The notes under the pieces are model-generated. The model made no database searches. It saw only the letters and a list, made by a program, of their open reading frames with translations, and was not told the origin of the DNA. A stretch of DNA of 60,701 bases from Macrostomum lignano (taxonomy: Eukaryota), in assembly GCA_002269645.1 (NCBI GenBank), contig NIVC01002037.1, forward strand, positions 211,518-272,218, in the 5' to 3' direction. The translations under genes were made by a program, and so were the position numbers. This document shows, one piece after another, positions 1 through 24,300 of the stretch. How positions within the stretch are numbered: the first letter of the stretch is position 1; the number at the start of each line of letters is the position of its first letter.

Positions 1-2064
1 AGGTCAACAGGTGCTCATCAAATGATTCCATTCCTGGGCAAATCAGCTGCCGCATGCTGCATGCCTGGGTGATCTCGAACTTGCGTCTGTCAGCGGACAT
101 GCATGCCTGGTAGCGATGAGTTCAGGCAAGCGCAGAAAAAGCAGGAAAGAAGCTGAAAAGCAGCAATGCTTTTGTTTCATCAGACCATCTTCGTTGCTGA
201 TGAGAATCTGCTGTCTTTGCTGCTCCAGCCCTGACTTGCTTTTTGGCTGAACTTCTAAATTCACGACTGGGGAGACTTGTTGCTGAGAGTTGTGGGGAAC
301 ACTGTGCTTCCCAGTGACTGAAGCGAGCGATTCCCTGCGGCGTTAGGAACTCTCCGCGGCTTCTCTCAGTCAGTCCTTAGGAGTCTTAGCTGTAGTCAGG
401 AAAAAGAAAAACCATTTTTTTATAACTGACGCCAGTGCATCAACTTTATTCTTCTTCTACAATAAAGAATACATTTAACAAACTTAGCAGCTACTTTCAG
501 TAGCAAAATAAGCGTCAGACGGGTAGAAACTTTTATTGTTGCATATATTTGTACTTACAGCATATTTCGCATGAGCAGAAGTCTCTTGCATGACACCGAA
601 GTGTAACAAACTGCTGTACAGGGGAGATTCTGCTGCACAGTTTTGGGGTCATCGTGTGGTTGATGCACACAACTTCTGTGCAGAGTGCAATTGTGTCTGA
701 ATCTGTTTGAATCAAACTTGCCTTATGTGATCAGTGTTAATTCAGTTCAGTTACAGTAGTCAACTAAGAACAGGCGAAGAACCCGTTTACAAACTACTTT
801 CAGTAACCAATTAAGCGCTTTCTTAACAGATTTCACAACTAAGTAGCAAATGTAAAAATTCTGCCTTTGAACTCTTTGTTATAGTTAGAGGCAAGAGTGC
901 TGTGTGCACCCTGGCGCAATTTAAGCGGCATTATCACACAATCGGCGAGAGGCATTGCTGCCCGCGGATACGTACGCAGCCATACGCACAGGTACACACT
1001 CTAGCAGGAGTGTACAGCGGCCCTAACTTTATTAATCGTTAGGCATGTACACTTCACTGTGCCTTGGGGTTGGCCCTCAGGGGTATCAATTGCACGAGCA
1101 GAGCCAAGTCGAGATTCCAACTTAGCCCAAGATGAATGTGGCTGCACTTGGAATCGAGCCTGGGCCGCTGGCACGCGAGAGCGCCGTGATGACCAATTAG
1201 GCTACGCTCGTACGGTCCCCCGCTTTTTGAACTCACTTTAGATTTGATGCGAACGTAATTTCATGTTTTTGTTTCTCTGAAAGAATTCCCACACCCTTAT
1301 TGACTCAAGACCGTGACGGATTTGAGCTGTGTGGTGCTTCTTCCATCAGGCATCCAGCAAAAACTCCGATCAATGATGCACGCCATTCGCTTTCTCTGAA
1401 GAAAAAACGCTCCACTCCCTACCCAGCCTAAAAGAACAATTGCTGGTCACGTGTTTACTTTGCACGGAGACGAATTGTTTTCCAGCTCTGCGAATCTTCT
1501 AAGCAGCTCACGCTCATCCACGCTCCGCAGCTCATCCGCTGAGAGGCCGTGAGAGATGTTTTCACGCTATGCGGAGCAGGTTGGATCTGGAAAACAGTGG
1601 GAAACTTTCTTTAGTAAATAGGAGCGAAAACAGTTGATGGGAACTCGTTGCTAGGAGGCGGAGGGGATCTGCCACGTGACGAAATAGGAAACTGCCAAAC
1701 TGGATAGGAGAGAGGCGCATCGAGGATGTGACTGCGCAGATGGTAAGTCACGTTCGATTTCTACGCTCGTATAACCAGTAAAGAATAGAAATTTTAATGA
1801 ATGTTTTCACCTTGTATGGAACGACACTATAAAGTAACTTGCAATTATACTTCAAGCATTCTCTACCGAAAGCTCTACTACTCTCAGGCAGGTTCGCTGA
1901 CAGGCTTAATTGGTGCTCTGCTTACAGGATAGAAGCCCGAGGGACTGGAGCTCTCTCGACAGGGTTTCTTGCCCCAAAAGTTAGTGTAAACTCAGCATCA
2001 ATCATTGCCTTTCCTCTTCTTTTTTCTGATCCAACTTTTTTGAAGCCGCGTTTTGTTGACACAC

Positions 2065-2078
2065 GTTGCCATGGCAAC
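2065..2078. promoter_or_regulatory. RFX X-box, perfect palindrome GTTGCCATGGCAAC, upstream of WSC-PAN gene 1
   Basis: Exact match to the established RFX palindromic consensus, ~290 bp before ATG 2367. CCAAT at 2118-2122. Function is inferred. Confidence 0.65.
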
Positions 2079-2217
2079 AGAGTGGGACTGGGCTCACGAT
2101 TTAACAAATTTTGAGGGCCAATGAGATTCGAGTCTTCAAAAGTTGCAAGGGATTATATGGGGGGGGGACTTCGCGATCACGGACTGAAGGCTTGAATTCA
2201 TTAGCTATTGCCCTCGA

Positions 2218-2369
2218 TTGGTGCCTAAGCTGCAGGCTATTGCACTCCATTAGTGCCTAAGCTGCAGGCTATTGCACTCCATTGGTGCCTAAGCTGCAGG
2301 CTATTGCACTCCATTGGTGCCTAAGCTGCAGGCTATTGCACTCCATTGGTGCCTAAGCTGCAGGCTATG
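2218..2369 (+). repeat. 32-bp tandem repeat (4 full units + 1 partial) ending at the start codon of gene 1
   Basis: Unit TTGGTGCCTAAGCTGCAGGCTATTGCACTCCA starts at 2218, 2250, 2282, 2314 and 2346. The last unit reads GCTATG and supplies ATG 2367. Confidence 0.95.
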
Positions 2370-4927
2370 CAGCTGGCGTTCCAAAAACTGCTGGCAGCTC
2401 TGCTGTCACTTGGCAGCGTGCTGGTGTCGGCACAGCTGGCAGTCAAGTCCGTCAGCTACATCGGCTGCTTCGTTGACCGCAACGACAGCTCCAGGGACTT
2501 GACGGGCCTGTCGGGCATCACCCGCATTGGCCCATTTAGCCAGATCAAGCCCGCCGGGAGCCATCTGTTCCGCTTTGACATGACCATCGGCAGGTGCGTC
2601 AGGCTGTGCTGGCTCGGCCGGTTCAGGTACCTCGGCCTGCAGGCCACCGGCTTCTGCAGCTGCAGTCAGAGCCACGGCTCCCACGGGCCGGCCTCCGAGA
2701 CCGAATGCAACCGGAACTGCACAGGCGATGCCAAACAAATCTGCGGCGGTCTGCTCAGGAATTCGATTTACGAACTGGTTTATGAAAACGGTGAGCGAGT
2801 GATGGACTCAGGATTGTTGAGCACATTGGAAAGCGAATCTTCAACAGCTCATTTCTCCCACCAAGGATTAAATTGGTTGCTCCCAGGTCAGTTGGTTCGG
2901 AAGACTCTACAGTCATGGGCAGCTGTTTAGATTGAAGCCCCATTGAAACGCACTAACTTGCCTACACTTCAAATTTGCGCTCAGCGAACAATTCTAAGAA
3001 CTCCCATTGTGAAACAAACACTGCGACTTTATATATCAATGGTAAATCAAGTGTAAGCTTCAAACTGTAAACTATACAATAAATAGAGTTCAGTATTTAT
3101 CAGTGAGAGCCAAAATAAACAATCAATGTGGATACAATTGTTTTTGACAATCTAAATGATAATTTGGACATTCACAATGAGAAACGCATACAGCGAGCCA
3201 TATAGTCCGTGGACAATCTAATCGATGAAAAGCCGTTCTAAATGAGAACTCGGACATTCAAAATAATAAAATGCCATTTTAAGTGATAATTTTCGCTGCC
3301 AAATGTTTTCAACAGATTGCTTGAATTTTTAACTGATTAACGGAACAAGAACTCAACAAAAAGTCAATCTAGAGTGATTAAAAGGCAGAAGAACTAAAGA
3401 CAAAGGATGGCAGCATTGGCAGCTGCAGTACCCTTGCTGCCACTTTGATGGAGTGCCCAGCCTTGATGGCATCGATCAGGCGACGGCGATCTGCTTCACT
3501 TGTTTGAGGCGGCATTCTGCTGCTGCTGGTGCGCGCGATGAAAGAAATTCTCATTTAGAATGGCAATTTTTATCGATTAGATTGGCCACAGACTCTGTCC
3601 ACGGAGCGAGCTGCCGCAGCCATAGAGCAGCCATTGGCCATAGAGTGTTTCTCGTTTTGAATGTCCAAATTATCATCTAGATTGTCAAAAACGATTGTGC
3701 ACCACCCAGGAACTCCTCATATGGGCATCGAATAGAGCAACACTCGTGCCATGCGCGTGTTAAGAAACTTTCAATTGACCTGGACCCAGGTGCCTTCCAC
3801 ATCTGGTGACTTTGGTTCAGACCAGACTAATGTCACATCAAAGCCACGTCAGCCATATCTTCTCTTGGGCTCAGATCATAGACTAGACTCAAAAAGAACT
3901 CTTAGAATTGTTTGCTGAGCCAAGGATCCGCCCTCGGCCTGATAAAAACGCATCCTCGGACTTTCTTTTCCATAGAACGATTAATTATCACGTGTGATCT
4001 ATACTTCTAAACCGACAATATCTACCTCTAGTTGAAACATGGTTGATTCAAATCATGGGTTTCAACCATAGACAGTCTCCGCGGACCGCGAAATTACCAC
4101 AAAAAGACTGCTGAAATAACAGTCATTGTCTTTTCATTCTGCCAGCGGGCCCCAATTTTGCAGTCGGGCATCTGTGGCGTTTTCAGCTCACATTTTTAGT
4201 AGCCGTCTTTCCCCAATATAACTGTCGGTTGCTTCCTTTCACTCAAAGTAGATTGTTCTAGTCTGCCGTTCTCCAAGTTGGGTGTAGAAATCCAAGCCAT
4301 GATAGACTCGAAGCAGCTGCGATTTGCATTTGTTGATCTGTCTCACAATGCATTCCATCGGAGCTTAAATTTTTAACTCTTCTTCTTCTTCTTCTCTTCT
4401 CTTGTTTCTCTTATTTACTGTCTCGAAAATTTGTCTATGGTCTGAATGTACACCCCGACAGACGCTCTGCCCCACAGCCCAGCTAGCAGCGGTACAAATC
4501 TATGGTAAATATATGGAACCTCCTATTTCCGTCCGCACAGAGGGGTAACACGGGCATGAACAATAAGTTCTTCAAGTAAACTACTGTATTTCTTAGGATG
4601 CATATTGCTGGGAATTACTTGCAGTTTTAGGGTATCCTGGATTGTCGTCAACAATAAAACAAAGCCTCTGGTATTTCAGCAACTGGCGGCTTCAAGACGC
4701 TGCCAGCAGCATCGCAGCCTCTGGTGTCTGACCCAGGATTCAGTGTCAGCACTCACTGGAGTCTGCCCGCCGCCGTGTCGCTCGAGTGCCTCGCCGCCTG
4801 CCACCGCAGCCCCAACTGCCTCGCCTGCGCTTTCGTGCAGTCCAGCCGGATGTGCCGGCTCCTGAGATTCGCCGCTGTTCCCAGCGAGGTCGCCAGCGAG
4901 GCCCAGTGGGTCTGGATGAAGCTGTGA
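2367..4927 (+). CDS. Secreted WSC + PAN/apple-like protein 1 (exons 2367-2790, 4680-4927; 223 aa)
   Basis: Hydrophobic signal peptide MQLAFQKLLAALLSLGSVLVSA. 8-Cys WSC pattern YIGCFVD...C-x3-C...YLGLQ...CxC...C-x3-C-x-G...CGG...NSIY. Phase-1 intron GTGAGC 2791 to TTTCAG 4679 joins in frame to a C-x3-C-x5-C...F-x6-C-x-L module. Confidence 0.85.
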
Positions 4928-5264
4928 TCCTTGACTGAGCCGTCACTTAACAAAAATTCCCAAATTACATCATGCTCTGCGACAAAAATAAACCTGGGCC
5001 AGTGCCCTGCTGGGAAAAATTGTCACGGTTAGCGCATGTACGTGTGGCTACTACGAGTAGCAGAGAAGCGTAAAACTTCGATTTTTTGCACCAAACGAGT
5101 TATAAAATTGGAATCGGTTCGAAAATCTTTTATCGAAACAAAAAACTACAGTAAATCCACTCAAGCACGGGAGCTCAGTGTCTCAGTTTTTATGTTCCCA
5201 TAAAATTAAAGCTCTCATCGGATTAGCTACGGAGGAAGGCACAATGCGTCTCTTCTATTTTACA

Positions 5265-5279
5265 GTTGCTATTAGCAAC
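5265..5279. promoter_or_regulatory. RFX X-box-like palindrome GTTGCT-ATT-AGCAAC upstream of gene 2
   Basis: Perfect inverted half-sites with a 3-bp spacer, which the RFX consensus allows. ~410 bp before ATG 5691. TATATAAG at 5621. Confidence 0.5.
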
Positions 5280-5690
5280 TGAAAATCTGCATAAAAAAAC
5301 AAAAAATGCAGGCGCTCCTGCCAGTCTCGTACGATGGTAACAATGGCAAGCCATGCATCCGTGGCTCTTTTTATTGAGTAGCAGTGAAACATTGATCGTG
5401 CAGTCTTCAATGCGGGAAAAATCTGCTGTCGAAAAAGCTGCAGAAACATTCAATCGGAGTGCGAATCGATATCCGGTGCGCTAAACGGCTTAAGTCATTA
5501 TTGCTGAGCACGTCTGACACAATGAGGCCGCCATCAATGGTGGAACCGGAGACCGGAAAGGCTGCAGTTTCAGCCTATTGCGGTTGTGGATTCCCTCAGA
5601 CTCTCAGGGGTTCGGTTGACTATATAAGTAACTCAAGACAGCCCTCAGCTCGAAGCAGCTCGCCCACTGGCCCCGGGCCCAGGCTCCAGG

Positions 5691-6783
5691 ATGTTGCATC
5701 CCTTGCTGCTCCTAGTACTAGCAGCCCTGAGCACAATGGCGAATGCTCAAGCAACAATTAGCCACTCAAACTACATCGGTTGCTATGTGGACGGGGACGA
5801 CACCAGCCGAGACTTGACCGGCATGGCGCCGTTTTCCACCTTCGCGTCCACGAGCGTCGGGTCCGGCATTCTGTACAGGCCGGACATGACGGTGTCCATG
5901 TGCGGCAGGATCTGCGCTCTTGGCAGATTTCGCTACTTTGCTCTACAGGCCACCGCCTTTTGCAGCTGCGATTCAACCTACGGCAGCCACGGATCCGCAG
6001 CCGAAGCCGACTGCTACCAGGACTGCGCTGGCAACGCGTCGGAGAAGTGCGGCGGACCCTACAGGAATTCCATCTACGAAAATGTCTACCAGCCTGGTAC
6101 GAGCCCGCGTCTAGGAGGCTTTAAAGCCTTCTTTAAAGAAAACTAAAGCCTTAGCTGTTCTTTGTTGCGTAGCCACCTGAGTAGCTGAAGTCCCTCTGGG
6201 AAATCTTGAGAGGTCTAACTATGGCTGAAGAACTAAGTTCCCTGAATATATTCATAACAGAGTCGTGAACAAGGACTACATGTACTAAAGTAGAAGGACG
6301 CAACACTCAAAGTTCAGAAGCTCAGTGTCGTCATGACGTCAGCCGAAGCTTAGGGACGACTGGTCATGTACTCTGGAGGCAGTGCAAGACTGCGAAATAC
6401 CGGTACGAGTACAGAAGAGACTCTAGATGGCACGCGCACGTATCGTATTTGTAGAAAGAGCCTTTTTTATTTAAGACCAGAACGGCATGGTCCTCACTCC
6501 CCTACGCCGCATTTCTTCACTTACAGTCGGTTCAAAGTTCACCAAGGCCGCCTCGAGCTCCAACAGCATCGTGAAAAACGCAGGCCAGTCAATCCTGACC
6601 CACTGGAACGACACCTCGCCATCAGCCAACGGCCAAATTAAATGCGCGGCCACTTGCCAGCGCAACCCAACCTGCCTCGGATACGCCTTCGGGCAGTCCA
6701 GCCGCACCTGCTGGCTGACGACCTTCGCCTTGGCGCCCCCGATCGTCGCTGGCGAGTCGGCCTGGATCTGGATGAGGAACTGA
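5691..6783 (+). CDS. Secreted WSC + PAN/apple-like protein 2 (exons 5691-6096, 6527-6783; 220 aa)
   Basis: Signal peptide MLHPLLLLVLAALSTMANA and 8-Cys WSC domain. Phase-1 intron GTACGA 6097 to TTACAG 6526. Exon 2 contains CAATCQRNPTCLGYAFGQSSRTCWL, a PAN-type core. Confidence 0.88.
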
Positions 6784-9700
6784 AGCTGGAAACCAGCAAG
6801 TTCGAGCGAAGCGATCACTCGGCTGCGACACAGACAGATTTTTGAGTAGCAACGCAATGAGCAAAATATAAACAAAAGAATTTCTTGCAACCCAATTTTT
6901 ATGCATTCTGGAGTTCTCTTTTCTTAGAATGACTTTCCTAAATTTAAAATCCTGCTACAGCTACCAGAACTATAAGCAGCTTTCTTAAAACTTTGACTCA
7001 TCGATCCACAACTTGACGTTTCGAACATTACAACAACAAAACAAAAAATACGCAACTCAGAAAAGTAAAGTCATGCTGTCAGCGTGTGTCAAATAGAGCG
7101 CCGCAACGCGGTGTCGGGCGCTCCGGCGTTGCACAGCAGGAAGTCCACATGTATCGAAAGGTTCGCCTGGCCCTCCTAAATGGGCCCCGTGAAGTATATA
7201 AGCAGCAGGATGGGCAGCAGCTCTCGGTCCGGATCTCGTGGCCCGCCGGCGCAGGATGGTGGACGGGCGTTGTAGCTGGGCCCTCAGGCGCAGGTCTTGG
7301 TCCCGACTCTCTCGTCAGCTCGAAAGGCCGCACGGAGCAACTCCGAGCGCGCCGAGTCCATCTGCCGCTCCAGAGTGGCCATCGGCGTTCAAGTCTCGGC
7401 GTTGTACAGCTGGACGATTTTTATCACCGTTTGTCACAGCCGTCGAGCCCTCTGGCAGTCGGGCAGAGCATCGGACTGAAGGACAGCCCGGATGGATGGG
7501 TAGCCTGTCAGGGGCGAGCCCTTAAGTCTAGAACGTACGAAAAGGTTTGTAGTGCATGCGCCCTTGTCAGTTGGCAGGGCGCGTTGCACTTTGGGGCTGG
7601 TTGGGGGGGGGGTTGGCGGGCGTGGCAGGGTCTGGCCGCCGGCCGGGCTTTGCGCGTGCCCCTCCCCAGCCGTGCCCCTGCCCCGTGCTCAGGGCTGGAT
7701 GGCTGCGGCCGGGCCAGCTTTGGCGTGGGTGCGGCCCCTCCCCCCCTAGGCGGGGTTTTGATTGGCTGGCCGGCGTGGCCAGTCTCTATTTTGTTGGGGT
7801 AGCTTGTTTGGGTGGGCTTAGCCGGTCTGCCCCAGGGTTTGATTATTATTTAATGCGGCTCTGGGCCTTGCTCGCGCCATTTGCTCTGTTTGCTCTGTTT
7901 GTTCTGTTTGTTCTGTTTGTTCTTTTTGTGTTTTTGTGGGCTCCGAGATAGTAAGCGCGAGACTTGACTTGAGTAAGAAACAGCGACATTAGCTACCTAC
8001 GATAACAGAAACCCGAGAGCTCAATTGAGAAGTCAGTCTTTGAAAAGAGTCTGAGAATTAAGAAGAAATTAGAAGCCGGCTTGAGACCTCAGAGCCAATC
8101 AACAAACGTGCGAACCTGCGCTTGAGACCTACGAGCAATAAACGTACGAACGGCGATTTGGCCACTGGTAAGCCGCTGCTGCTTGAGTTCGTTCTTTTCT
8201 GGGAGCTTGTTAGGCTGAGTTCTTGCCAGAGCGTCATAACGCCGGGAGATCATATAGCTTTTTGTAGTATTGTACCGTCTACTCTATATAGTGTGTACAA
8301 CCTACAGTATTGAGACTAGAAGCACTCGAGAGTGTCACCACACCTCAAGTCGCAGCGTGAACTCTGAGTGTCACAACACCAGAGGGATCGAAATATTATT
8401 GCAGAGCGTCGTCACGCCTTCTCGTATCCATAAAAGTACAGACAGAGCGTCACTACGCCTGTATATTACGTATAATATATATTGTACTCGGGACTGGGCA
8501 CCCAAACCGACCCGGGTTACGACAGGTTGTTACGAAGTCGTTACGTCGTTACCACGTTACGAAAAAGTCGTGTATCGAAACTTTTAGACGTTTCCTACGG
8601 CTGTTTGTTCCATTTAGTGTCAGCTTTCCAGCGCTGTGGAAAACAGTCTCGACTCCACCGAAAAAAATCATTGTATTTCAGTCACTTAGGGTCACACGGA
8701 CTTTCACGCACAATGGCCCCGTGCGCAGCCGTAGATCCCCGTAAACATCGTAGACCATGCAGCTAGACCAGCGAGGCACATGAACCGCTGGCATCGCAGA
8801 AGTTCAGTTACGATGGTTTCCTGGATGCTGGCAATTAGGCCAACGCATATACAGCAGCAGACTTAACCCAACGGAAGTCGTTTTAGAAAGTTTTTTTTTA
8901 AATCCTTAGAAATGACCCAAAACAGTAAATTTGAGCTCCGATAAGCATCTAATTTACGGAGACCCAAGCGCATAGACTTCTAAAAGTTTAAAACGACCTT
9001 CTATTGAAATCCATGGAAGAACCTTGAAGCTTCTTTCGAAAAAGCATTCGCTGCGGTTGATTGTTGCTTTTGTTCTGTAACTCTATTTTTCAAGCAGAAA
9101 TTTGCTATAAAAATAGTCAATAGGCTCAGTAAACGGTGCAACCAACAACGGAAGTAGGGAGCCGGTACATTATTGTCATTTTTTCTTCTAATAACAACCT
9201 CTGTCTGCACCCAACTATGGGCATGATGTTGGCTCGTATCGGCCTATTGGGGGGCGCAGAGCTGGGGAACTCGGCAGCCTGGCCCTTCAGTTGCCGTAGG
9301 GCGCTGTTGAGGCGCTGCCAGATTACGAGCACGAGCGTATTACTCAATCAGCAGAGATCTAGAAATCAGTAAATCACCTCTTAACAAAGGACTTGAAAAA
9401 TGCCTATGCTCGTAGGTCCTGGCTTAGCCTTTATTATTATTAAGATGCAGAGGGAAGACCCCACGCGCTCACGCGCTCGCATGCAGAACAGGCGGGAAAG
9501 GCTGACAGCAGCGGCTCCTGAGGGGTCCAGCAAGTCAGCGATGAGGCAGTCAGTCAGAGCGACAGTGCGGGCGTGCACGGACGTGGCGCAGTTGCTCGGT
9601 CGGCCGGTGTAGCAATGCGAGGGCCAGAGGGACGGGCGCACCGCGGCCAAGGGTCCGGAGGCAGTGGCCCAGAAGCATCTGACGGCGCCGGCGCAGGGTA

Positions 9701-10436
9701 TGCCTCCTAATATTTAGTACTCAACACACGCGCTACATGTACCCTTAGTATGTGAATTGTGCATTGTGCATTGACATGTACTTTATGATGGCAAACACTC
9801 CGCACTGCAGTTAGTATGGGCGTTAAATGAAGCACGTCTATTGAAGAGGTTATTGTTGGTGTTAAAATACAAAAAATCAGGAAGACCGAATATAATGCTA
9901 ATTAATGCTCTCACAAACTACTGAAAGTAAGATTTAAGAACGGACCACGCCTAGGAGGGCTTTGGGTCTCCCTCGCTCGTTTTTCTAAGCAGAAGCCACG
10001 GCACGGAAACCATGGGTAGAGCCGTAATGTCCTTTGTCCACAGCCGGTGCAGAAGGTGCTGCTTCTGACTCTGCGGGCCGACTCCGCAACCGGTTGTCAC
10101 CAAATTTCTCAATATTACTCGTATATTTTTCAATGATTTTCAATGCAAGAATATTGAATAATATTTGCTGGGAATCCATCTTGGCGTTGATGATGCAACA
10201 GAAAATAACTCTGATCAGAGAAAGTCACAGCAGAGCAAGCAAAGTTAATCAAAGCTCAAAACTAATCATTTCCAGCATCAAACTCCAGTTTAGAAGTGAC
10301 TTTATTAACTTTAACAGAGAATTAAGAGAAGTAGGCTAAGAAATACAAAGATTTTAATCAAGGAGGGGCTCTCGATTTGTCAGTAATAATGGCTCCGCTG
10401 TTACGGACTGCTCAAGTTCAACTCATCGCTCACTGA

Positions 10437-11189
10437 TCACAGCTTCACCCAGACCCACTGGGCCTCGCTGGCGACCTCGCTGGGCACAGCGGCGAATCTC
10501 ATGAGGCGGCACATCCTGCTGGACCGCACGAAGGCGCAGGCGAGACAGTCCGGGCTGCGGTGGCAGGCGGCCAGGCATTCAAAAGCCACGGTGGCCTCCT
10601 GGCTCCAGTAAACCCTCCTGACCAGCATTTCGAGCACGGTGATCAGGGCGATTTCGGTTGAAGCCATCGACTTGTAGGACCCATTGGCTGGAAGTTAACG
10701 GAGAAATAAAACTTATTTTAAACAAAAACATTGTCAACAGCCACATCTTAACTCACCTGATGTGTAGATGTTTTCATGCAGACTGATTTTTTTGGTCCCA
10801 CCGCAGGACTGCGAGTTGTTTCCGGCGCACTTCTTAACATCGCAGCCTCCACCGTTGCACGGCGGAATACGCTGCACAGTCGACCCGCAGACGCACTCGC
10901 TCCCATCGCGCAGACCGAAGTAACGAAATCTGCCCATGGCGCAGGCGCCACTGCAGAACTCGATGGTCATGTCGTCTCTGTCAAGGACGCCTCTTGCAAG
11001 GTCAACATCATAGGCTCCAAGCATTGCCACACCCGTCAGCCCGTTCAAGTCTCCATGCGAGCTGTTACCGAAAGTGTCCAGGCAGCAGTCCACGTGGTTA
11101 ATGAATTGCACAATGGGCTGACCGAACACCGAGGCAGCTGTCAAGAGTCCAACAGTCGAAGTGAGCGAGATGAAGACCCATGGCAACAT
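10437..11189 (-). CDS. Secreted WSC + PAN/apple-like protein 3 (exons 11189-10757, 10687-10437; 227 aa)
   Basis: Signal peptide and a WSC domain with 10 Cys. 69-bp phase-1 intron GTGAGT...TTCCAG. C-terminal module nearly identical to those of genes 1 and 4. Confidence 0.88.
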
Positions 11190-11316
11190 TGCTGTTGCAG
11201 TTTAGCAGCAACAGGGAAATTTCACGGAGAAGATCTGGCCTGGCCGCTTAAATGCAGTTGATGCTGACTTTGCAGCTCTTTTACTTTATTGGTTGCCAGG
11301 CCCTGATGCTGAAATG

Positions 11317-11330
11317 GTTGCTATGGAAAC
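11317..11330. promoter_or_regulatory. RFX X-box GTTGCTATGGAAAC upstream of gene 3
   Basis: Fits the GTHNYY-AT-RRNAAC X-box consensus. ~130 bp before ATG 11189. CCAAT on the minus strand at 11292-11288. Confidence 0.6.
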
Positions 11331-12223
11331 GATGCAGCTGTGCGTACAAGCCAGGCCCGTATGAGATATTTGCATCATCGAAGGCCAGTCCCAAGTTTCG
11401 GCCTTAATGAAATATGGGAGACTTTTAAGTGGTGACAGCACCGGTGTGTGAATGCTTTATGAGCTGTCACTCATTTTCTTGCGAGCGTCATCAATATTTG
11501 ACTTCAATCTCTCACTCTCACACAGTCACTGACGTAAAAAATCGTGTGAACGTGCGTGATTTCGGACATTTTATACCGTACTTACAAGTCAGTAAGGTGG
11601 TGATTAACGTGCCTCAGTAATTCTTTTATTACGAGTACTTTTCAACTTCAGCAAAATAATTTCGTCGCTTCTCTGCTCCAGTTTACATGCAGTTCCCAAC
11701 GTATCATATTCAACCATCGCTATGAGCACACAAGCAACTTTGCGAGCAGCGGCTCTTGCAAACTTTTCTTTCTTCTTAACTTTTCTCCTAGAAGCTAGCT
11801 TTGATAATTCACTTTGCGAAGAAAAAGTGAATAAAATTGTCATACCTTGTTGGGGTTACAGCGGGAATTTTCGCAAACTGCCTTCTCACACGGCCATGCT
11901 CTCCACGAAGTGATAGTCGTTGTTCCGACAGAAGTCACGAGATGCTCAGCTTCCTACCAAAAAGCATCATTCACATGCGGAAGCAGAGCGGCGCTGCAAC
12001 AGGAATTGAAGACTGCCTTCAGTTTGGATCGATCACAGTTTCTCACGTCTCCACAGCTTTTGTTAAAGCATCAGCTGCAGTGTTCCATTCTCAGTGAGCA
12101 CTTCGCACCGGGCATGATCCGGTCTTGGAGCCGCTGCTCCGGAAGACAAGAGTTTGCAGCGGCAGGACGCGCGGCTTCCTCTTGGCTTGGTTTAGCTTAG
12201 TACCTGGCATATCAGCAGGCAGG

Positions 12224-12758
12224 TGCAATATTAGCAATCATGAATGCAATATCAGCAATCATGAATGCAATATCAGCAATCATGGGTGCAATATCAGCAA
12301 TCATGAATGCAATATTAGCAATCATGAATGCAATATCAGCAATCATGAATGCAATATCAGCAATCATGAATGCAATATCAGCAATCATGAATGCAATATC
12401 AGCAATCATGGGTGCAATATCAGCAATCATGAATGCAATATTAGCAATCATGAATGCAATATCAGCAATCATGAATGCAATATCAGCAATCATGAATGCA
12501 ATATCAGCAATCATGAATGCAATATCAGCAATCATGAATGCAATATCAGCAATCATGAGTGCAATATCAGCAATCATGAATGCAATATCAGCAATCATGA
12601 ATGCAATATCAGCAATCATGAATGCAATATCAGCAATCATGAATGCAGCAATCATGAATGCAATATCAGCAATCATGAGTGCAATATCAGCAATCATGAA
12701 TGCAATATCAGCAATCATGAATGCAATATCAGCAATCATGAATTCAATGTCAGCAATC
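12224..12758. repeat. 21-bp minisatellite (GCAATATCAGCAATCATGAAT), ~25 copies
   Basis: Directly visible. Single-base variants and one internally deleted unit. Confidence 0.97.
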
Positions 12759-13417
12759 GTAAAAACTCTTTGTTTCGTAATTCTACTTTTTAGTGCTTCT
12801 GTGCTCAAAGCTTCCTAATGGGGTCTCGCTCAAGCAGAAGCTGTGAAACAATTTAGGAAAGAAGCACCACATATCTGCTTTCACATGTATAGCTTGTATT
12901 AAAATATTGAGGCACTTTCGGTTTGATCTTACGATATGGAGAAGTATCTGATATATGCCTGGGTAATTCTCGCATAAAATAAAACGAAATTGCTCTGATT
13001 ACATCTACTACTGTTTCAGTAGCATAAGTCAGTTTTAGATGCTAAAAATAGGCGGCGAGTTTGATTTTCATTTTTCACCAATTCTAACTATAAGCTACCT
13101 TTTACGAGCTACTAAAATGTTAAGCAGCACAGCATCAGAGTCAGCCAATGCATTTTTTGCCAAAAGGTCAAACTCGTACTAATCTTGAAATCTCGATCTA
13201 CATGCATTGTATTTGTTATATAGCTCGCACAGGCATTGAAGCAATGTAATCTATTAACTGGCTCATACCAAAGCAGAGAGGCAATAAATATAGTCTAGAA
13301 AATATATTAAATATTGTCAATATTCCATCGGATGTTGCGCCAAAGAGCAGCTACAGGTGTGCAGAGACTTCATGCCTAGAGAATCTACCAAAATGATCAG
13401 CGACAGACCATCGCAGG

Positions 13418-14180
13418 TTACTCAGTGTACAGCTTCACCCAGACCCACTGGGCCTCGCTGGCGACCTCGCTGGGCACAGCGGCGAATCTCATGAGGCGGC
13501 ACATCCGGCTGGACTGCACGAAGGCGCAGGCGAGGCAGTCCGGGCTTCGGTGGCAGGCGGCGAGACACTCGAAGGCCACCGTGGCCTCCTGGCTCCAGTA
13601 GGTGCTGTTCTCCGGCTGTCCGGGCGCGGTGGTGAGCATCGACTTGGTTGAGGCCACGCGCTTGAAGAGGCCGGTCTCTGAGCAGCAGCACAAATGCAGA
13701 AAAATGTAGATGCAGGAATTGTTAGCCAAAAGACCCGAAAATGTTCTTACCGGGCGCATAGATGTTCTCATAAATGGAGTTTCTACTTTGACCGCCGCAC
13801 TTCTGGCTGCTGTTTCCAGTGCAGTCTTCGTTACACTCAGAATCTGATGGAGCGGCTCCGTGCAGTCCGTAGCTGTTGCCGCAGAAGCAGAAGGCTCGTG
13901 CCTGCAGACCGAAGTAGCGAAATCTGCCCAGGGCGCAGAGGCTGCTGCAGCTCTCGATGGTGACGGTGGCCATATTGAAAAAGTAGGCGAACTCTATCTT
14001 ATCGGTGAAAGGCCCGATGGTCTTCAGCCCAGTCAGGCCTTTCAAATCTCTATTGCTGTTGCTGTCAACAAAGCAGCCGATGTATCCGTGATGCAGCACA
14101 CTTGGCTGACTCATCGCCACCAGGAACAGCAGGGCCAGAGGCACGGATAGGAGGACAATCAGGTGCACGGAGCGCTGCAT
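13418..14180 (-). CDS. Secreted WSC + PAN/apple-like protein 4 (exons 14180-13751, 13677-13418; 229 aa)
   Basis: Signal peptide MQRSVHLIVLLSVPLALLFLVAMS and 8-Cys WSC domain. 73-bp phase-1 intron GTAAGA...GCTCAG. Same C-terminal module as genes 1 and 3. Confidence 0.88.
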
Positions 14181-14433
14181 GCTGGCGCACTGGCGGTTAC
14201 AGTAAGCTGGATGAAGACTGAAGGCTGCTGGACACCCTTTGACTAGATTTGCAGGCAAGCCAAGAGACCAAGCCAAGACGTCTTAGGCGGATGCGTATTA
14301 TATACAAAATTCGCCACAAGAAACAATGGCATGAATGAATGAAATTCATGCAGATGCAATTTCATTGGTTGCTGCGACTCGCGGGCCTAGTGGCAAAAGT
14401 TCTCTTGGGCAGACTGGCGAGCAGTTCAGACAG

Positions 14434-14447
14434 GTTGCCATGGTAAC
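14434..14447. promoter_or_regulatory. RFX X-box GTTGCCATGGTAAC upstream of gene 4
   Basis: One base from the perfect palindrome, ~250 bp before ATG 14180. Minus-strand CCAAT at 14368-14364 and TATATAAT at 14304-14297. Confidence 0.62.
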
Positions 14448-15621: not shown

Positions 15622-16843
15622 CACCCGAGACATCCCACTCGTATTCAACCCCAAGGACACCTGAGACATCCCTGTTCAACCAAATTGACACCTGAGACAT
15701 CCCGTTCAACCAAATTGACACCTGAGACATCCCGTTCAACCAAATTGACACCTGAGACATCCCTGTTCAACCAAATTGACACCTGAGACATCCCTGTTCA
15801 ACCAAATTGACACCTGAGACATCCCTGTTCAACCAAATTGACACCTGAGACATCCCTGTTCAACCAAATTGACACCTGAGACATCCCTGTTCAACCAAAT
15901 TGACACCTGAGACATCCCTGTTCAACCAAATTGACACCTGAGACATCCCTGTTCAACCAAATTGACACCTGAGACATCCCTGTTCAACCAAATTGACACC
16001 TGAGACATCCCGTTCAACCAAATTGACACCTGAGACATCCCGTTAAACCAAATTGACATCCGAAACATCCCATGTAACACAATGGACACCTGAAACATCC
16101 CATGCAACCAAATGGACACCTGAAACATTCCATGCAACCCAATGGACACCTGAAACATTCCATACAACCCAATGGACACCTGAAACATTCCATACAACCC
16201 AATGGACACCTTAAACATTCCATACAACCCAATGGACACCTGAAACATTCCATACAAACCAATGGACACCTGAAACATTCCATACAACCCAATGGACACC
16301 TGAAACATTCCATACAACCCAATGGACACCTTAAACATTCCATACAACCCAATGGACACCTGAAACATTCCATACAACCCAATGGACACCTTAAACATTC
16401 CATACAACCCAATGGACACCTGAAACATTCCATGCAAGCTAATGGACACCTGAAACATCCCATGCAAGCTAATGGACACCTGAAACATTCCATACAACCC
16501 AATGGACACCTGAAACATTCCATGCAAGCTAATGGACACCTGAAACATCCCATGCAAGCTAATGGACACCTGAAACATCCCATGCAATCTAATGGACACC
16601 TGAAACATCCCATGCAAGCTAATGGACACCTGAAACATCCCATGCAAGCTAATGGACACCTGAAACATCCCATGCAATCTAATGGACACCTGAAACATCC
16701 CATGCAATCTAATGGACACCTGAAACATCCCATGCAACCCAATGGACACCTTAAACATCCCATGCAACCCAATGGACACATGAAAAAACCCATGCAACCC
16801 AATGGACACCTTAAACATCCCATGCAACCCAATGGACACTTTA
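15622..16843. repeat. Compound minisatellite: 31/30-bp unit GACACCTGAGACATCCCTGTTCAACCAAATT switching near 16050 to 30-bp unit AATGGACACCTGAAACAT(T/C)CCAT(A/G)CAACCC
   Basis: Directly visible; about 13 + 26 units sharing the GACACCTGA-ACAT-CC core. Confidence 0.95.
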
Positions 16844-17799
16844 AACAGAAACTAAAGCAACAATATCAATAAATATTAATGATTGAATAGCGAAAACAAT
16901 TCGAAAATACGTATTTTTCCAGTTGGTTAAAAGATAGCCAAGTATATTGTGTTAGTTCGATATAACAAAATTTAACCAAAAATCTTGCTGATTGGGCAAC
17001 AATCCTCATAATGGAACGTTGAAAAAGAAATGGACAAGCAGAGCAGCAGACAGGTCAATAAATTTATTAACATCAAATTCTCGAGGGCATTGCCATGCAG
17101 CTATTCTTTCATATTTGATTTATAAAACCAAAAAACTCATAATTTGGCCAAAAAGCAGCTCTAAGGACTAATGGGAGACCAGTTTCTGTAACAGAATTTT
17201 AATATAAAAACTACAACAATAAGGCAAGATGCGTACACGGTACTATAAGTAGGCTACTCAATAAACATGCAGAAAGTTTATAAATTGACAGAAAAAACAA
17301 ACAAGTGAATGTTGATTGCTAGCTAAGTAAAACAAAGCCTATCACGCGGTGCATTCGTGACGAATTATAATAATAAAGTCTACTATGCATAATAATTATG
17401 GCAAAATGGGAGAAAATTCCTATTAAATAAAAATTTCTAGCGCTCATTAAAAAAACTGCAAGCGTCATTGATAATCAGAACAGACACTGCGCGAGTTCAA
17501 CCGGTGCATGATCACGGAGCCTAATGAACAGTTCATACGGACTAAAAAATAACAGAAAAACGCGGATGTAGAAAACTAAAGGAAACGCAGGAATCTGGCT
17601 GTGGGACTCGAGTTGCTGATAAATATCTGCTGACAGGCACTGGCGGCGAGTTGAGGAGTGGCTGCGGTTGCACTGGCCGAGTTTGTTACAAACTGAATTC
17701 TGATGCACGAATATAACAAATGAGGATAGTCTGAGAGCGGGAGGCAAGGGGACTGACGGGATCTTGAGTGTATTAAGAAAAGAGAGGGGAGAAGAGGAG

Positions 17800-18215
17800 A
17801 GGAAGACAGAGAGAGAGAGAGTGGAAGAGGGAGAAGGAGAGGGTGGAGAGGAAGGAGAGGGTGGAGAGGGTAAAGAGGAAGGAGAGGAAGGAGAGGGTGG
17901 AGAGGGTAAAGAGGAAAGAGAGGGTGGAGAGGAAGGAGAGGGTGGAGAGGAAGGAGAGGGTGGAGAGGAAGGAAAGGGTGGAGAGGAAGGAGAGGGTGGA
18001 GAGGAAGGAGAGGGTGGAGAGGAAGGAGAGGGTGGAGAGGAAGGAGAGGGTGGAGAGGAAGGAGAGGGTGGAGAGGAAGGAGAGGGTGGAGAGGAAGGAG
18101 AGGGTGGAGAGAGTAGAGAGGGTAAAGAGGAAGGAGAGGGTGGAGAGGGTGGAGAGGAGTGGAAAGGAAGGAGAGGATGGAGAGGGTGGAGGAGAGACTG
18201 GAAGGAGGGAGTAGG
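17800..18215. repeat. Purine-rich 18-bp repeat (GAGGGTGGAGAGGAAGGA), probably in the PC 3' UTR
   Basis: About 22 units just downstream of the PC stop. Candidate minus-strand AATAAA at 17068-17063. Confidence 0.9.
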
Positions 18216-18380
18216 AGAGAGCTGAAGACAGAGAGCTGATGCATGCAGAGAGGAGGCCAAGGCCAATGAAACTCGGCATAGCGGCACCCACTAGACAAGC
18301 CAGAACCAGTCGTTGCTACCAGAATCAAATGGGCTCCCACACCGCCAGCAACAGTGAGTCCGGCAGCTGCGCAACCGCCA

Positions 18381-21300
18381 TCACTCCATATCGATGAGCA
18401 GATCGTTGCCCTCCACTTTGTCCCCGGCGCCAACGTGGATGGTTTTGATTCGGCCGGCGATTGGCGCGGTGACCACCAGCTCCATCTTCATGGCGGACAC
18501 CACCATGAGCGGCTGGCCCTTCTCAACCACATCGTCCGACTGCACCTTGACGTCGAGGATCTCGCCAGGCATCGGGGCACCGATGGAGCCCTTGACGGTG
18601 GCCTTGGCCTTGGGACGGATGGTCACGTTCTTTGAAGCCTCCTAAAAAAGTGAAAAAAACGCGTTTTTCTACTAAATAGTAGACCGATGCGGTTTTGCTA
18701 AGTAATAATAGCAAGTTACTAAAAGTTTACGAATATAAGCAAGCATTTTGAGCTTCAACTTTTATGCGATTTGAGGACATTTTTTCCATGGTTCAGGGCG
18801 ATTCTTCTGCAGGATCAGGGGCGATTCTGATGGATCGGGGGCGATTCTGATGGATCGGGGGCCGGCGATTCTGATGGATCGGGGGCGATTCTGATAGATC
18901 GGGGGCCGGCGATTCTTCTGCAGGATCAGGGGCGATTCTGATGGATCGGGGGCGATTCTGATGGATCGGGAGCCGGCGATTCTGATGGATCGGGGGCCGG
19001 CGATTCTGATGGATCGGGGGCCGGCGATTCTGATGGATCAGGGGCGATTCTGATGGATCGGGGGCGATTCTGATGGATCGGGGGCGATTCTGATGGATCG
19101 GTGGCCGGCGATTCTTTTGGATCGGGGGCGATTCTGATGGATCGGGGGCGATTCTGATGGATCAGGGGCGATTCTGATGGATCAGGGGCGGTTCTGAAGG
19201 ATCAGGGGCGATTCTGATGGATAGGGGGGCGATGATCCTGGTGGATTTAAAGGCGGTTCTTTAACTGCTTCTAGTGAAGTTCCAGCGATTCCCATTGTTC
19301 TTTTATGACTGTAAGAAGTTTTACTAAGATCTTTAGCTAAGCCAGCTGCTAGCATTACCTTGTCAGTGATGTAGACCACTCTCTGCTGGCCGTTCAGCTC
19401 GAAGAAGCACTCGCTCTTGCCCGTCTTGTCCGGCTCGGCCACGGCCAGCGGCTTGATGTAGATGGTCTTGCCGCGCTCCAGGTGGAGCTCCAGCTCCTCG
19501 GCAATCTTCGGGCCCTGGAAGAACACGCGGGTCTGCAGCTTGCTGACCGGCCCGTACTTCTGGCGGATCGCCGCGAAGTCGTCGAACACGCGCGGATAAA
19601 GAGCGGCGCTAATCACGTCTTTGTCGCTGATCTCCTGGTCGCCGAATTTCTCCTGCAGGCTGGCCCGCAGAGCGTCGAAGTCCAACGGCGGCAACTCGGC
19701 GCCCGGCCGGCCGGAGAAGCGCGGCTGCCGGCCCTGCAGGACGCCGCGGGACAGCTGCTCGGGGAAGCCGCCAACCGGCTGGCCGATCAGGCCGTCGAAG
19801 AATTCCACCACCGAGGTGGGGAAGGACAGCTCGGAGGCCTTGTCGATGACGTCCTGCTTGGACAGGTTGTTGGCCACCATGAACTGGGCCAGGTCGCCCA
19901 CGATCTTCGAGCTGGGAGTCACCTGGAGGGTTCGAGAAGCATAGTTATTGAGTAGTGTAGTTGAGTAGTATAATTGAGTAGTATAATTGAGAAGTATAAT
20001 TGAGTAGTATATTTAAGTAGTATAATTGAGTAGGATAATTGAGTAGGATAATTGACTAGTATAATTGAGTAGCACAACGAGTAGTATAATTGAGTAGGAT
20101 AACTGAGTAGTATAATTGAGTAGTACAACTGAGTAGTACACTGTGTAGTATAATGGAGTAGGATAACTGAGTAGTATAATTGAGTAGTACAACTGAGTAG
20201 TACAACTGAGTAGTATAATTGAGTAGGATATCTGAGTAGTATAATTGAGTAGTACAACTGAGTAGTACACTGAGTAGTATAATTGAGTAGGATAACTGAG
20301 TAGTATAATTGAGTAGTACAACTGAGTAGTACAACTGAGTAGTACAACTGAGTAGTATAATTGAATAGGATAACTGAGTAGTATAATTGAGTAGTACAAC
20401 TGAGTAGTACACTAAGTAGTATAATTGAGTAGGATAACTGAGTAGTATAATTGAGTAGTACAACTGAGTAGTACAACTGAGTAGGATAACTGAGTAGTAT
20501 AATTGAGTAGTACAACTGAGTAGTACAACTGAGTAGGATAACTGAGTAGTATAATTGAGTAGTACAACTGAGTAGTATAATTGAGTAGGATAATTGACTA
20601 GGATAACTGAGTAGTATAGACCGGAATTCCGGGGAGCAGTCCAGACTGGGGTAGGGAATTAAAACCAGTGGATAAGAATGTGATAAGAGAAATTATTGCG
20701 TATACGATATTATGGGAGTTATAGAAAGAAGGAAACGGCGAAGCCAAACCTTAATAATATCGCCCATAAGCTCGTTGGCTTCGGCAAATTTCTTCTTGAC
20801 CAGCTCAAACTGGTTGGACAGGCCCAGGCTGATAGACTGGAACTGCAGGTTGGTGTACTGGCCACCTGGGATCTCGTTTTCGTACACGTCCGCGTTGCCG
20901 CTGCGCATGGTGCTGGTGCACTCAAAGTTGGCGTACAGCCGCCTGCGGGAGCGGGGGTGATGCTGGGTTTCCGCGCATGCCACCAGGGAAATCCGTGACT
21001 TAGTACCTAGAAAACGGGTGACTTAGTACCGGGGAACCGGTGACTTAAAGCCGGGAAACCGGTGAGTGGTGACTTAGTAATAATCAATAAGAAAAAAAAA
21101 TGGAACAGGACAAACCAGTTCACCTGGGAACAGGACAAACCAGTTCACCTGGGAACAGGACAAACCAGTTTACTTGGGAACAGGACAAACCAATTCACCT
21201 GGGAACAGGACAAACCAGTTCACCTGGGAACAGGACAAACCAGTTTACCTGGGAACAGGACAAACCAGTTCACCTGGGAACAGGACAAACCAGTTCACCT

Positions 21301-24300
21301 GGGAACAGGACAAACCAGTTCACCTGTTGACAGTTCACACATTCACCCGAGAAGCAGGCGCATACCTGGCCACCTCCCAATACGCGCTATACGGAGTGAC
21401 ATCGCTGAGTTTGACTCCGCAGTCCTGCTGCAGGCAGGACACCAAAGCGCCCATAGACGGCTGCGAGGTGATGCCGCTCATGGAGTCGACGGCGCAGTCG
21501 ATGATGTCGGCGCCGGCATCGGCGCAGGCTAGCAGTGTGGCAACTCCAGCGCCGGCGGTGTCGTGGGTGTGCACGTGCAGCGGGTGGTCCGGGAAGGCCT
21601 TCTTCAAGGCGCCGATGAGGGCGCGGGCGCCGGCCGGTTTCAATAGGCCGGCCATGTCCTTGACGGCCAGGATGTGCGTGCCCGACTCCACCAGCTGGTC
21701 GGCGGTCTTCAGGTAATAGTCCATGTTGTACTTTTTCGAGCTGGGTGTTATTAAAGGATTAGGCGTGATGACTTTCCGCAATTTTGAAAGCTAAGCTCCA
21801 CATCTTGTACTTTTAGTCCAGTACTCATTTTTTTGGCGCCACCCCCCAGTGCCCCGATTGAGACCCCAAATTTTAATGGCATCAGTTTTGAAGCTTGATG
21901 ATGCCTTATGAGATCAAAACTATATTGGTGCCAGATGCGACCCGTTTTGGCGCCATTTAAGACACGCTTTTTGCGCCATTTGAGGCACCCATTTTGGCGC
22001 CATTTTGTTAAAATGTTTGATGGAATTTCAGACACCTATTTTGGCGCCATTTCAGTAATTTTTGGCGCCATTTCAGTAAATTTTGGCGCAATTTGAGTAA
22101 ATTTTGGCGCCATTTCAGACACCTTTTTGGCGCCATTTCAGTAATTTTTGGCGCCATTTCAGTAAATTATGGCGCCATTTCAGACACCTTTTTGGCGCCA
22201 TCTACGACATATTTACGCGAAATATGAGATCTATCGGCGCCACTTGGGACTGATTTCAGCTTACTTGAGCACATCTCCAGTGTAGCACACGGCAGCCTCG
22301 ACAACTCCGCCAGCCTTCCTCACGGCGTCCATGCCGACTTCCATATTAGGAACATAGTTAAGCGAGTCGAACACGCGGAAAATGTCCATGCCGGATTTCA
22401 CGGCCTGGTCGCAGAACTTGTACACCACATTGTCCGGATAGTTGGTGTAGCCAACAGCACTGGCGCCGCGCAGCAGCATCTGGAAGGGGATGTTGGGCAC
22501 CTGCTGGCGCAGCTCCTCCAGCCGCTCCCAGGGGCACTCGTGCAGGAACCGCATGGCCACGTCGAAGGTTGCGCCGCCCCAGCACTCCAGCGACAGCAGG
22601 CCGGACAAATTTCTGGCCGCGTAGGGCGCGATTTTCAGTAGGTCGTAGGTTCGAACCCGGGTTGCTAGGAGCGACTGATGGGCGTCGCGCATTGTGGTGT
22701 CGGTGAGCAGCACGCTCGGGTGCTCCTTGATGGCGCGGGCGAAGGCTTCGGGACCCTGGTCCACTAGGATTTGGCGCCAGCCCTTCGGCGGCTCAGCGGC
22801 TGCAATTGTTTTGGGCAGTGGAGTTGCGGTTATTTATTAATACTTTCGATACATATCGGCAAAACTATTATACAGTATTCACAATAGAGCTACTGAATAT
22901 CTTGACATCTCCGTACTCCGCACATACTCCGTGCCTTACTTGGGGTCAGCCCTAGATTAAAGTGGCGGCCCGGGTTTACTGCTGCGCTGCTTCAGTCCCT
23001 TATGGAAATCAGACAGTTCTATCGTGAGCACAATTGAGAACAGGACTCACTGTAGTCCACCTGCGGCACCGTTGGCTGTACGTCGGGTATGCGAATCTCG
23101 GGTATGCCCAGCGGAGTCATGGACTTGTTGACCAGGATTTCGCCTGAAAGGGGGATGATTGATGTTTAGAAAAATTTAGAGGCTAAAATTGATAAGGCAT
23201 TACTTTCAAGGTAGACTTAGACTATTGAATAAGCTCATTGGTTGGTCAAAACTAGGATAAAAGTGGTGCTTAGTATGACGACTGAAAGCTGGCATTCAAA
23301 ATGGCATCAAATCTGAGGACTGGCATCAGAAATGGCATCAAATCTGAGGACTGGCATCAGAAATGGCATCAAATCTGAGGACTGGCATCAGAAATGGCAT
23401 CAAATCTGAGGACTGGCATCAGAAATGGCATCAAATCTGAGGACTGGCATCAGAAATGGCATCAAATCTAAGGGCTATCATCAGAAATGGCATCAAATCT
23501 GAGGACTGGCATCAGAAATGGCATCAAATCTAAGGACTGGCATTCAAAATGGCATCAAATCTGAGGGCTGGCATTCAAAATGGCATCAAATCTGAGGGCT
23601 GGCATTCAAAATGGCATCAAATCTGAGGGCTGGCATCAGAAATGGCATCAAATCTGAGGACTGGCATCAGAAATGGCATCAAATCTGAGGGCTGGCATTC
23701 AAAATGGCATCAAATCTTAGGGCTGGCATCAGAAACGGCATTAAATCTGAGGACTGGCAACAAATCTGAGGGCTGGCATCAGAAATGGCATCAAATCTGA
23801 GGACTGGCATCAGAAATGGCATCAAATCTAAGGACTGGCATTCAAAATGGCATCAAATCTGAGGACTGGCATTCAAAATGGCATCAAATCTGAGGGCTGG
23901 CATTCAAAATGGCATCAAATCTGAGGACTGGCATCAGAGATGGCACCAAATCTGAGGGCTGGCATCAGAAATGGCATCAAATCTGAGGACTGGCATCAGA
24001 AATGGCATCAAATCTGAGGACTGGCATCCGAGATGGCATCAAATCTGAGGACTGGCATCAGAGATGGCACCAAATCTGAGGGCTGGCATCAGAGATTGAT
24101 GCCAGCAGCAGTGAATGAAAATCACCAATGAAGTGGATCAGCCGCTGAGCGCGGTTCTTGTGAGCCTGCAGCTTGAACAGCTCCGGGTGCTGGTCAATAA
24201 ACGAAGTGTCCGTGGTGCCGGACAGAAACTTCTCGCTGCGCAGCACGTTCAGCAGGAACGGAATGTTGGTCTTGACGCCGCGGACGCGGAATTCTCGCAG

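Follow-up and report, generated by a model that had tools for sequence, protein, structure and literature searches.

Four tandem WSC-PAN genes of Macrostomum lignano with RFX-type X-boxes in their promoters: a candidate regulon predicted from sequence

The DNA analysed here, referred to as the window, is a stretch of 60,701 nt from the flatworm Macrostomum lignano (assembly GCA_002269645.1, contig NIVC01002037.1:211,518-272,218, forward strand). It contains a tandem cluster of four two-exon genes in the order G1> G2> <G3 <G4, and upstream of each gene lies a palindrome resembling the X-box, the binding site of RFX transcription factors, which are master regulators of cilia; these four palindromes are the subject of this report. 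Gene models were obtained by tblastn of the window with the translations of the WSC and PAN exons, followed by reading of the splice sites. In all four genes exon 1 encodes a signal peptide and a WSC domain, exon 2 encodes a PAN/apple domain and a phase-1 intron lies at an identical position. The start codons are at 2367 (+) for G1, 5691 (+) for G2, 11189 (-) for G3 and 14180 (-) for G4. The models of G3 and G4 were validated by the M. lignano UniProt entries A0A1I8IH79 and A0A1I8IHK9, respectively, to which the predicted proteins are identical. The coordinates of the features are collected in Table 1.

The G1-G4 proteins comprise ~220 amino acids and begin with a hydrophobic leader, after which no membrane-spanning segment follows; each has 12-15 cysteines and 2-3 N-glycosylation sequons. 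The WSC domain (PF01822) was detected with Pfam in all four genes at 44-60 bits (cut-off 27.8; E values of 1e-11 to 1e-16). The PAN domain (PAN_1, PF00024; cut-off 21.4) gave marginal matches in the two exon-2 open reading frames (ORFs) that were scanned, those of G2 (21.8 bits) and G4 (24.0 bits). A family profile compared with the PDB retrieved the WSC domain of Kremen1 (E = 2e-12), yeast Wsc1 and the N-terminal PAN domain of HGF (E = 0.003). An AlphaFold model based on an 18-sequence alignment had a predicted local distance difference test score (pLDDT) of 82, and Foldseek searches with this model returned Kremen1, Wsc1, the apple domains of factor XI/kallikrein and HGF. An earlier note on this DNA had described the four as WSC-PAN genes encoding secreted lectin-like proteins; the Pfam, PDB profile and AlphaFold/Foldseek results identify the products as secreted-type WSC+PAN proteins.

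The published X-box of RFX factors reads GTNRCC N0-3 RGYAAC, with GTTRCY as the half-site or monomer site (PMC10530576; bioRxiv 10.1101/2021.02.03.429678). The earlier note had placed palindromes of the RFX/DAF-19 type ~290, ~410, ~130 and ~250 bp before the four start codons. All four were found in the sequence at the coordinates claimed, the gene models give distances of 289, 412, 128 and 254 bp, and the palindromes fit the published definition. Two of the four match GTNRCC NN RGYAAC exactly and the other two each deviate at one position (C to T in a half-site in one, A at the Y position in the other); GTTRCY is fitted by 7/8 half-sites. The C. elegans-type consensus GTHNYYATRRNAAC matches, in 60.7 kb, only the three sites with a 2-nt spacer. 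Read in gene orientation, the promoter-proximal half-site is RGCAAC in every case (4/4), and the distal half-sites vary (GTTGCC, GTTGCT, GTTTCC and GTTACC). Both half-sites of X-box 2 are GTTGCT.

The whole 60.7-kb window was scanned with half-site log-odds scores for both halves, allowing spacers of 0-3 nt. The four promoter X-boxes took ranks 1-4 of all window positions (16.1-19.4 bits); the fifth-best score (14.8 bits) was within an intron of PC, the pyruvate carboxylase gene, and the remaining 46 kb of the window contained no site of >=16 bits. The comparison with a shuffled background that had been asked for with the earlier note gave an expectation of 0.32 sites of >=16 bits per window (mean of 60 shuffles), against four observed. 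The pattern GTTRCYATGGNAAC had 0 matches in 100 dinucleotide-preserving shuffles.

An empirical background was taken from 213 kb of ten other M. lignano loci around WSC-family genes (L001-L010, GCA_002269645.1). Seven sites of >=16 bits were found; L003 and L004 are homeologous, and one site was counted in both of them. Coding ORFs contain three distinct sites (L002:16464, L003:1148 = L004:447 and L009:4077). The other three are non-coding (L001:16386, L006:2075 and L009:11722) and have no recognisable gene as a neighbour; inspection of the ORFs around the background X-boxes revealed no recognisable ciliary gene. Over 259 kb in all, the background amounts to ~1 site in every 30-40 kb; a 420-bp promoter would be expected to hold about 0.011 sites, and the probability of four out of four promoters carrying such a site is of order 1e-8 on this basis. 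X-boxes at equal density elsewhere, the outcome that the earlier note had named as contrary to its proposal, were seen neither in the ten loci nor in the rest of the window.

Some of the X-box-like strings outside the cluster have features of their own. Those in coding sequence (L003:1148 = L004:447, L002:16464 and 16567, and L009:4077) encode peptides of the type V-A-[M/I/T], and genome-wide scans of M. lignano should mask coding sequence on account of such strings. A tandem pair of X-boxes 8 bp apart (GTTGCCATAGCGAC ... GTTGCCATGGCAAC) occupies non-coding DNA at L006:2053-2088, with no annotated or recognisable gene nearby. In an intron of PC, each unit of a 25-bp repeat includes GTTCACCTGGGAAC, a weak X-box-like string of about 10 bits.

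The other genes of the window are PC, an ETS/PNT gene and a UBE2Q-like gene, the identities of which were confirmed. In the 1.5 kb before them the best scores were 8.4, 7.6 and 11.1 bits, respectively, in line with the earlier note, which had seen no comparable site there. At 12 other gene starts of the WSC family in L001-L010, most of them belonging to WSC-PAN paralogues of ~210 amino acids, no site of >=16 bits was found within the preceding 1 kb; the best score was <=9.1 bits except for one of 14.8 bits at -793 in L010. The claim that WSC-PAN genes carry an X-box therefore stands for this four-gene cluster and fails for WSC-PAN genes in general. In a neighbour-joining tree of the WSC domain, one clade comprises G1+G2, G4 with its homeologues and the P0007 group, and G3 is on a long branch.

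The WSC exons of G1-G4 have 44-58% nucleotide identity and a synonymous divergence (dS) of 1.4 to infinity; since dS is saturated, the duplications are old. The ratio of nonsynonymous to synonymous divergence (dN/dS) is about 0.3 in the WSC domain and about 1 in the linker. The four promoters share no 9-mer, and MAFFT fails to align even the X-boxes with one another, so that the promoters are indeed otherwise dissimilar, as had been claimed. The X-box is the only feature conserved among these promoters of anciently diverged paralogues, a comparison of paralogues rather than of orthologues. Because dS is saturated and the promoters cannot be aligned, neutral retention of a 14-15-bp element in 4/4 genes is very unlikely, and its persistence in every gene of the cluster speaks for selection on the motif. 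A shared mobile element or conversion tract as the source of the palindromes was ruled out, the flanks being unrelated. At the 3' ends of the genes, the PAN cores of G1, G3 and G4 (4780-4927, 10437-10590 and 13421-13590) are 91-95% identical in nucleotide sequence with a dS of 0.2-0.3, which indicates that gene conversion has acted on the 3' exon alone in these three genes and has left G2 unaffected.

Promoter elements were read from the sequence and start sites were predicted from TATA or TATA-like elements. G1, G3 and G4 have the order X-box, CCAAT, TATA or TATA-like element; CCAAT lies 33-74 bp downstream of the X-box, the TATA or TATA-like element 35-65 bp beyond it, and the predicted start ~100-165 bp downstream of the X-box. 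X-box 1 is about 115 bp upstream of the predicted G1 start site, and the tandem repeat in the G1 leader adds about 130 bp to the distance between X-box and ATG. No CCAAT was found on reading the G2 promoter; a 5' non-coding exon of G2 nearer to X-box 2 is possible but speculative. In G3 and G4 the CCAAT box is directly joined to an additional RFX half-site, and an element of G2 at 5336-5350 (GGTAACAAT / GGTAACAATGGCAAG) resembles these fusions, which may constitute a composite RFX/CCAAT element. About 330 bp upstream of X-box 1, a stretch resembling an exon end is present at 1680-1745 (CACGTGAC then ...GCGCAGATG, followed by GTAAGT across the putative splice junction); should this prove to be an upstream 5' exon belonging to G1, X-box 1 would fall within an intron.

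Table 1. Features of the WSC-PAN gene cluster (positions in the window)
Feature	Position	Strand	Details
X-box 1, GTTGCCATGGCAAC	2065..2078		Perfect palindrome; 19.4 bits, rank 1; 289 bp 5' of G1 ATG
G1 CCAAT box	2118..2122	+	Followed by TATA-like TTATATG at about 2154-2160
32-bp x 5.2 tandem repeat	2204..2368	+	96% matches; fills G1 5' leader, ends at ATG
G1 exon 1	2367..2790	+	Signal peptide + WSC
G1 exon 2	4680..4927	+	PAN/apple; ends at stop codon
X-box 2, GTTGCTATTAGCAAC	5265..5279		3-nt spacer; 16.2 bits, rank 3; 412 bp 5' of G2 ATG
G2 TATATAA box	5621..5627	+	Strong
G2 exon 1	5691..6096	+	Signal peptide + WSC
G2 exon 2	6527..6783	+	PAN/apple
G3 exon 2	10437..10687	-	PAN/apple
G3 exon 1	10757..11189	-	Signal peptide + WSC
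G3 TATA-like TTTAAG	11247-11252		
G3 CCAAT fused to extra RFX half-site, GGCAACCAAT	11288..11296	-	
X-box 3, GTTGCTATGGAAAC	11317..11330		GTTTCCATAGCAAC in gene orientation; 16.1 bits, rank 4; 128 bp 5' of G3 ATG
G4 exon 2	13418..13677	-	PAN/apple
G4 exon 1	13751..14180	-	Signal peptide + WSC
G4 TATATAAT box	14297..14304	-	
G4 CCAAT fused to extra RFX half-site, AGCAACCAAT	14364..14373	-	
X-box 4, GTTGCCATGGTAAC	14434..14447		GTTACCATGGCAAC in gene orientation; 18.9 bits, rank 2; 254 bp 5' of G4 ATG

The introns of the cluster genes differ in length, 1.9 kb in G1 (2791-4679) against 430 bp in G2, 69 bp in G3 and 73 bp in G4, and that of G1 was likely enlarged by insertion. The UniProt entry A0A1I8IFZ0 (P0029) is a chimeric model of 1656 amino acids from a different assembly copy, which fuses an extra PAN exon with genes resembling G1 and G2 and with PC sequence in antisense; the WSC-PAN cluster therefore has at least one further member to the left of G1, outside the window. 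Near the left end of the window, a weak WSC-like fragment at 566-655 (-) (tblastn E values of 0.04-0.8) may be a decayed member of the family; no X-box was found near it, the best score being 10.0 bits at 750-764. Between the cellular genes, the ORF at 49851-50426 (-) is a fragment of a mariner/Tc1-type transposase (Pfam Transposase_1 and HTH_Tnp_Tc3_2), and that at 36963-37659 (-) had no Pfam match. Long minisatellites with units of 18-45 bp in up to 40 copies are unusually abundant in the intergenic and intronic DNA (12224-12758, 15646-16847, 17782-18221, 19919-20515, 21100-21310 and 44345-45383).

Because the X-boxes exceed both chance and background and are the sole element conserved in the four promoters, co-regulation of G1-G4 by an RFX-type factor, as the earlier note had proposed, is a well supported prediction. 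In the mechanism envisaged, an RFX-family dimer would bind each X-box together with general CCAAT- and TATA-binding factors, giving G1-G4 a common cell-type-specific expression, and the secreted products would act extracellularly as carbohydrate- or protein-binding modules. The likeliest expressing cells would be ciliated ones (multiciliated epidermis, ciliated sensory cells or protonephridia), since RFX and its motif mark ciliary programmes across animals and in the planarian; this is the least certain step. In Drosophila a degenerate X-box alone is not predictive, and a conserved X-box is an accepted predictor of RFX targets (PMC2375033). In Schmidtea mediterranea the Rfx orthologue is connected to cilia modules, the promoters of which are enriched in the motif (PMC12660999), so that the link to cilia holds in at least one flatworm. 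The parts of this proposal differ in strength. The X-boxes are very probably functional and under selection, and RFX is probably the factor that binds them; that the expressing cells are of a ciliated type is a guess falling a little short of even chances. For the proposal as a whole, RFX-type X-boxes co-regulating the cluster with ciliated cells as the likeliest site, the balance tips slightly in favour. A coat or sensory-surface secretion of ciliated cells formed by the WSC-PAN proteins, as suggested in the earlier note, would be plausible, and expression in gland cells is a serious rival to it.

Several observations weigh against this proposal. The scoring matrix is approximate, having been set up from the published consensus and not taken from a curated source. 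The G2 site is the weakest case, with its 3-nt spacer and a position ~380 bp 5' of the predicted TATA-directed start. In L001, a P0007-type WSC-PAN gene that falls into the clade of G1, G2 and G4 has no X-box; the motif was therefore either lost when the copy moved or kept only within the cluster, and it is not required for expression of this type of protein. No Fox/forkhead-type motif (TRTTTRY) was found beside the four X-boxes, and strong TATA boxes are commoner in high-output secretory genes than in ciliary structural genes. The proteins show no orthology to known ciliary components: their only domains are WSC and PAN, and the related sequences are paralogues from M. lignano and multi-WSC proteins. 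In libraries of 5.8 billion proteins and 1.8 billion representatives, the small WSC-PAN proteins were all from M. lignano and the other strong matches were multi-WSC proteins. The cluster, unlike the DAF-19/RFX regulon, consists of four lineage-specific secreted proteins with no known link to cilia. Finally, WSC-domain proteins are numerous among the seminal-fluid candidates with prostate-limited expression in M. lignano (PMC5977470 Table S1), and the prostate is a concrete alternative site of expression because the WSC proteins of this species are best documented there.

This last point leads to a reading in which the X-boxes are functional and bound by RFX, and in which secretory gland cells without cilia express the cluster, either those of the prostate that make seminal-fluid proteins or those of other glands. 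RFX would then have a cilia-independent output, in principle like that of RFX6 and RFX3 in pancreatic islets or of RFX5 at major histocompatibility complex (MHC) class II genes. The pairing of an X-box with CCAAT (a Y-box) recalls this non-ciliary MHC class II module, and promoters with TATA and CCAAT fit high-output gland genes. The family is also lineage-restricted, tandem and fast-evolving, as is typical of reproductive proteins (see the dN/dS values above). Two of the candidates, RNA815_17071.1 and RNA815_32421, have 'Plasminogen [Crassostrea gigas]' as the best match, which would fit a WSC+PAN protein (PMC5977470 Table S1); Mlig-pro46 is similar to WSCD2 (PMC6953679), and RNA815_80.4, with two WSC domains, is required for a prostate staining (PMC4490696). 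However, none of the 18 primer pairs used for RNA interference (RNAi) of seminal-fluid genes (18/76 candidates) maps to the window, L001 or L002, and none of the Mlig gene identifiers of those candidates equals that of a recovered WSC-PAN paralogue. X-boxes are lacking upstream of the gene with two WSC domains in L002 and of 11 further WSC-family starts, so that they do not characterize WSC genes in general, and a literature search returned no report of a role of RFX in flatworm glands. The search likewise found no paper connecting RFX with Macrostomum, and searches for the identifiers of the cluster genes in M. lignano expression papers and their supplements gave no match. We regard this reading, RFX-driven expression in glands, as rather unlikely.

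A different kind of explanation accepts that the palindromes are functional and denies that they are RFX activator sites: they might be bound by another factor recognizing GTTGCY/RGCAAC, or by an RFX1-like repressor acting outside the proper cell type. RFX1-type proteins can repress transcription, and the evidence for selection concerns the motif, not the identity or the sign of action of the bound factor. The single RGYAAC half-sites joined to the CCAAT boxes of G3 and G4, with the similar GGTAACAAT in G2, hint at a composite element that is not of the textbook kind. The match to the RFX dimer site is nevertheless very good, with two perfect or near-perfect 14-mers in addition to the half-site agreement noted above, and we know of no other factor family with this palindrome and spacing. 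By eye, NFI (TTGGC N5 GCCAA) does not fit in spacing or sequence and Myb gives no consistent fit. An explanation of this kind appears improbable. Least credible of all is that the sites are functionless, whether as chance matches or as remnants copied with the duplicated genes or by gene conversion. Since G1-G4 are paralogues, their sites cannot count as four wholly independent cases; gene conversion is active in the cluster, as the PAN cores show, and chance X-box-like strings do occur in M. lignano coding sequence. Against this stand the low expectations from the shuffles and from the empirical background, the unrelated flanks, with no conversion tract or shared mobile element over the sites, the saturated dS in the adjacent WSC exons, and the 12 paralogous gene starts elsewhere that are without such a site.

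If RFX-type co-regulation of the cluster is correct, young lineage-specific effector genes have been wired into a very old animal module, RFX and the X-box, to which an extracellular lectin-like output has been added. A candidate interpretation, offered tentatively, is that the RFX of Macrostomum has been co-opted for a lineage-specific battery of secreted carbohydrate-binding WSC-PAN proteins; such a battery could serve as a coat of ciliated epidermal or sensory cells, or could be a cilia-independent output in gland cells, for example of the prostate. Prostatic expression would point to a regulator of seminal-fluid genes in a model species for sexual selection. M. lignano is tractable by RNAi, in situ hybridization and transgenesis (PMC5730564), and a single-nucleus atlas of RNA and of chromatin accessibility by the assay for transposase-accessible chromatin (ATAC) is available (PMC11398382). 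The four compact promoters, each with one strong site, are ready-made reporter constructs.

Among known systems, one that is close in regulatory logic is the DAF-19/RFX regulon (the xbx genes of C. elegans and the dRFX targets of Drosophila), which shares with the cluster an imperfect palindrome, GTNRCC N1-3 RGYAAC, a site in the proximal promoter and the use of X-box conservation (PMC2375033; bioRxiv 10.1101/2021.02.03.429678). Its members are mainly intraflagellar-transport, Bardet-Biedl syndrome (BBS) and other ciliary genes conserved across phyla; in the cluster the conservation is among old paralogues and the dependence on RFX is a prediction. The Rfx modules of the planarian S. mediterranea, also a flatworm, support the use of the motif to mark ciliated cells within Platyhelminthes (PMC12660999). 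That species belongs to a different flatworm order, and neither WSC-PAN genes in those modules nor Macrostomum data were found there.

On the side of the proteins, the Mlig-pro genes of the same species also encode small secreted WSC-domain proteins in multi-copy tandem loci (PMC5977470, PMC6953679), and the cluster shows no identity to the 18 candidates with published primers. The domain folds match those of Kremen1, Wsc1, HGF and factor XI by profile or Foldseek comparison; the relatives that can be named are Kremen1, yeast Wsc1 and polycystin-1 for WSC, and plasminogen, HGF and factor XI for PAN/apple. The minimal arrangement of a signal peptide, one WSC domain and one PAN domain in ~220 amino acids occurs only in M. 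lignano among the 1.8 billion representative proteins.

In the S-X-Y module of MHC class II genes, the RFX5 complex occupies the X box and NF-Y the CCAAT Y box. The promoters of G1, G3 and G4 are like it in having CCAAT after the X-box in the proximal promoter of genes with a non-ciliary, extracellular function. The distance from X-box to CCAAT is variable in the cluster (33-74 bp) and fixed in the MHC class II module, and neither S nor X2 boxes were seen in the cluster promoters. RFX5, RFXAP, RFXANK and CIITA are vertebrate-specific, and the resemblance is architectural only. As a candidate regulon read from sequence, the cluster would represent a known regulatory arrangement, that of RFX and the X-box, and not a new kind of system.

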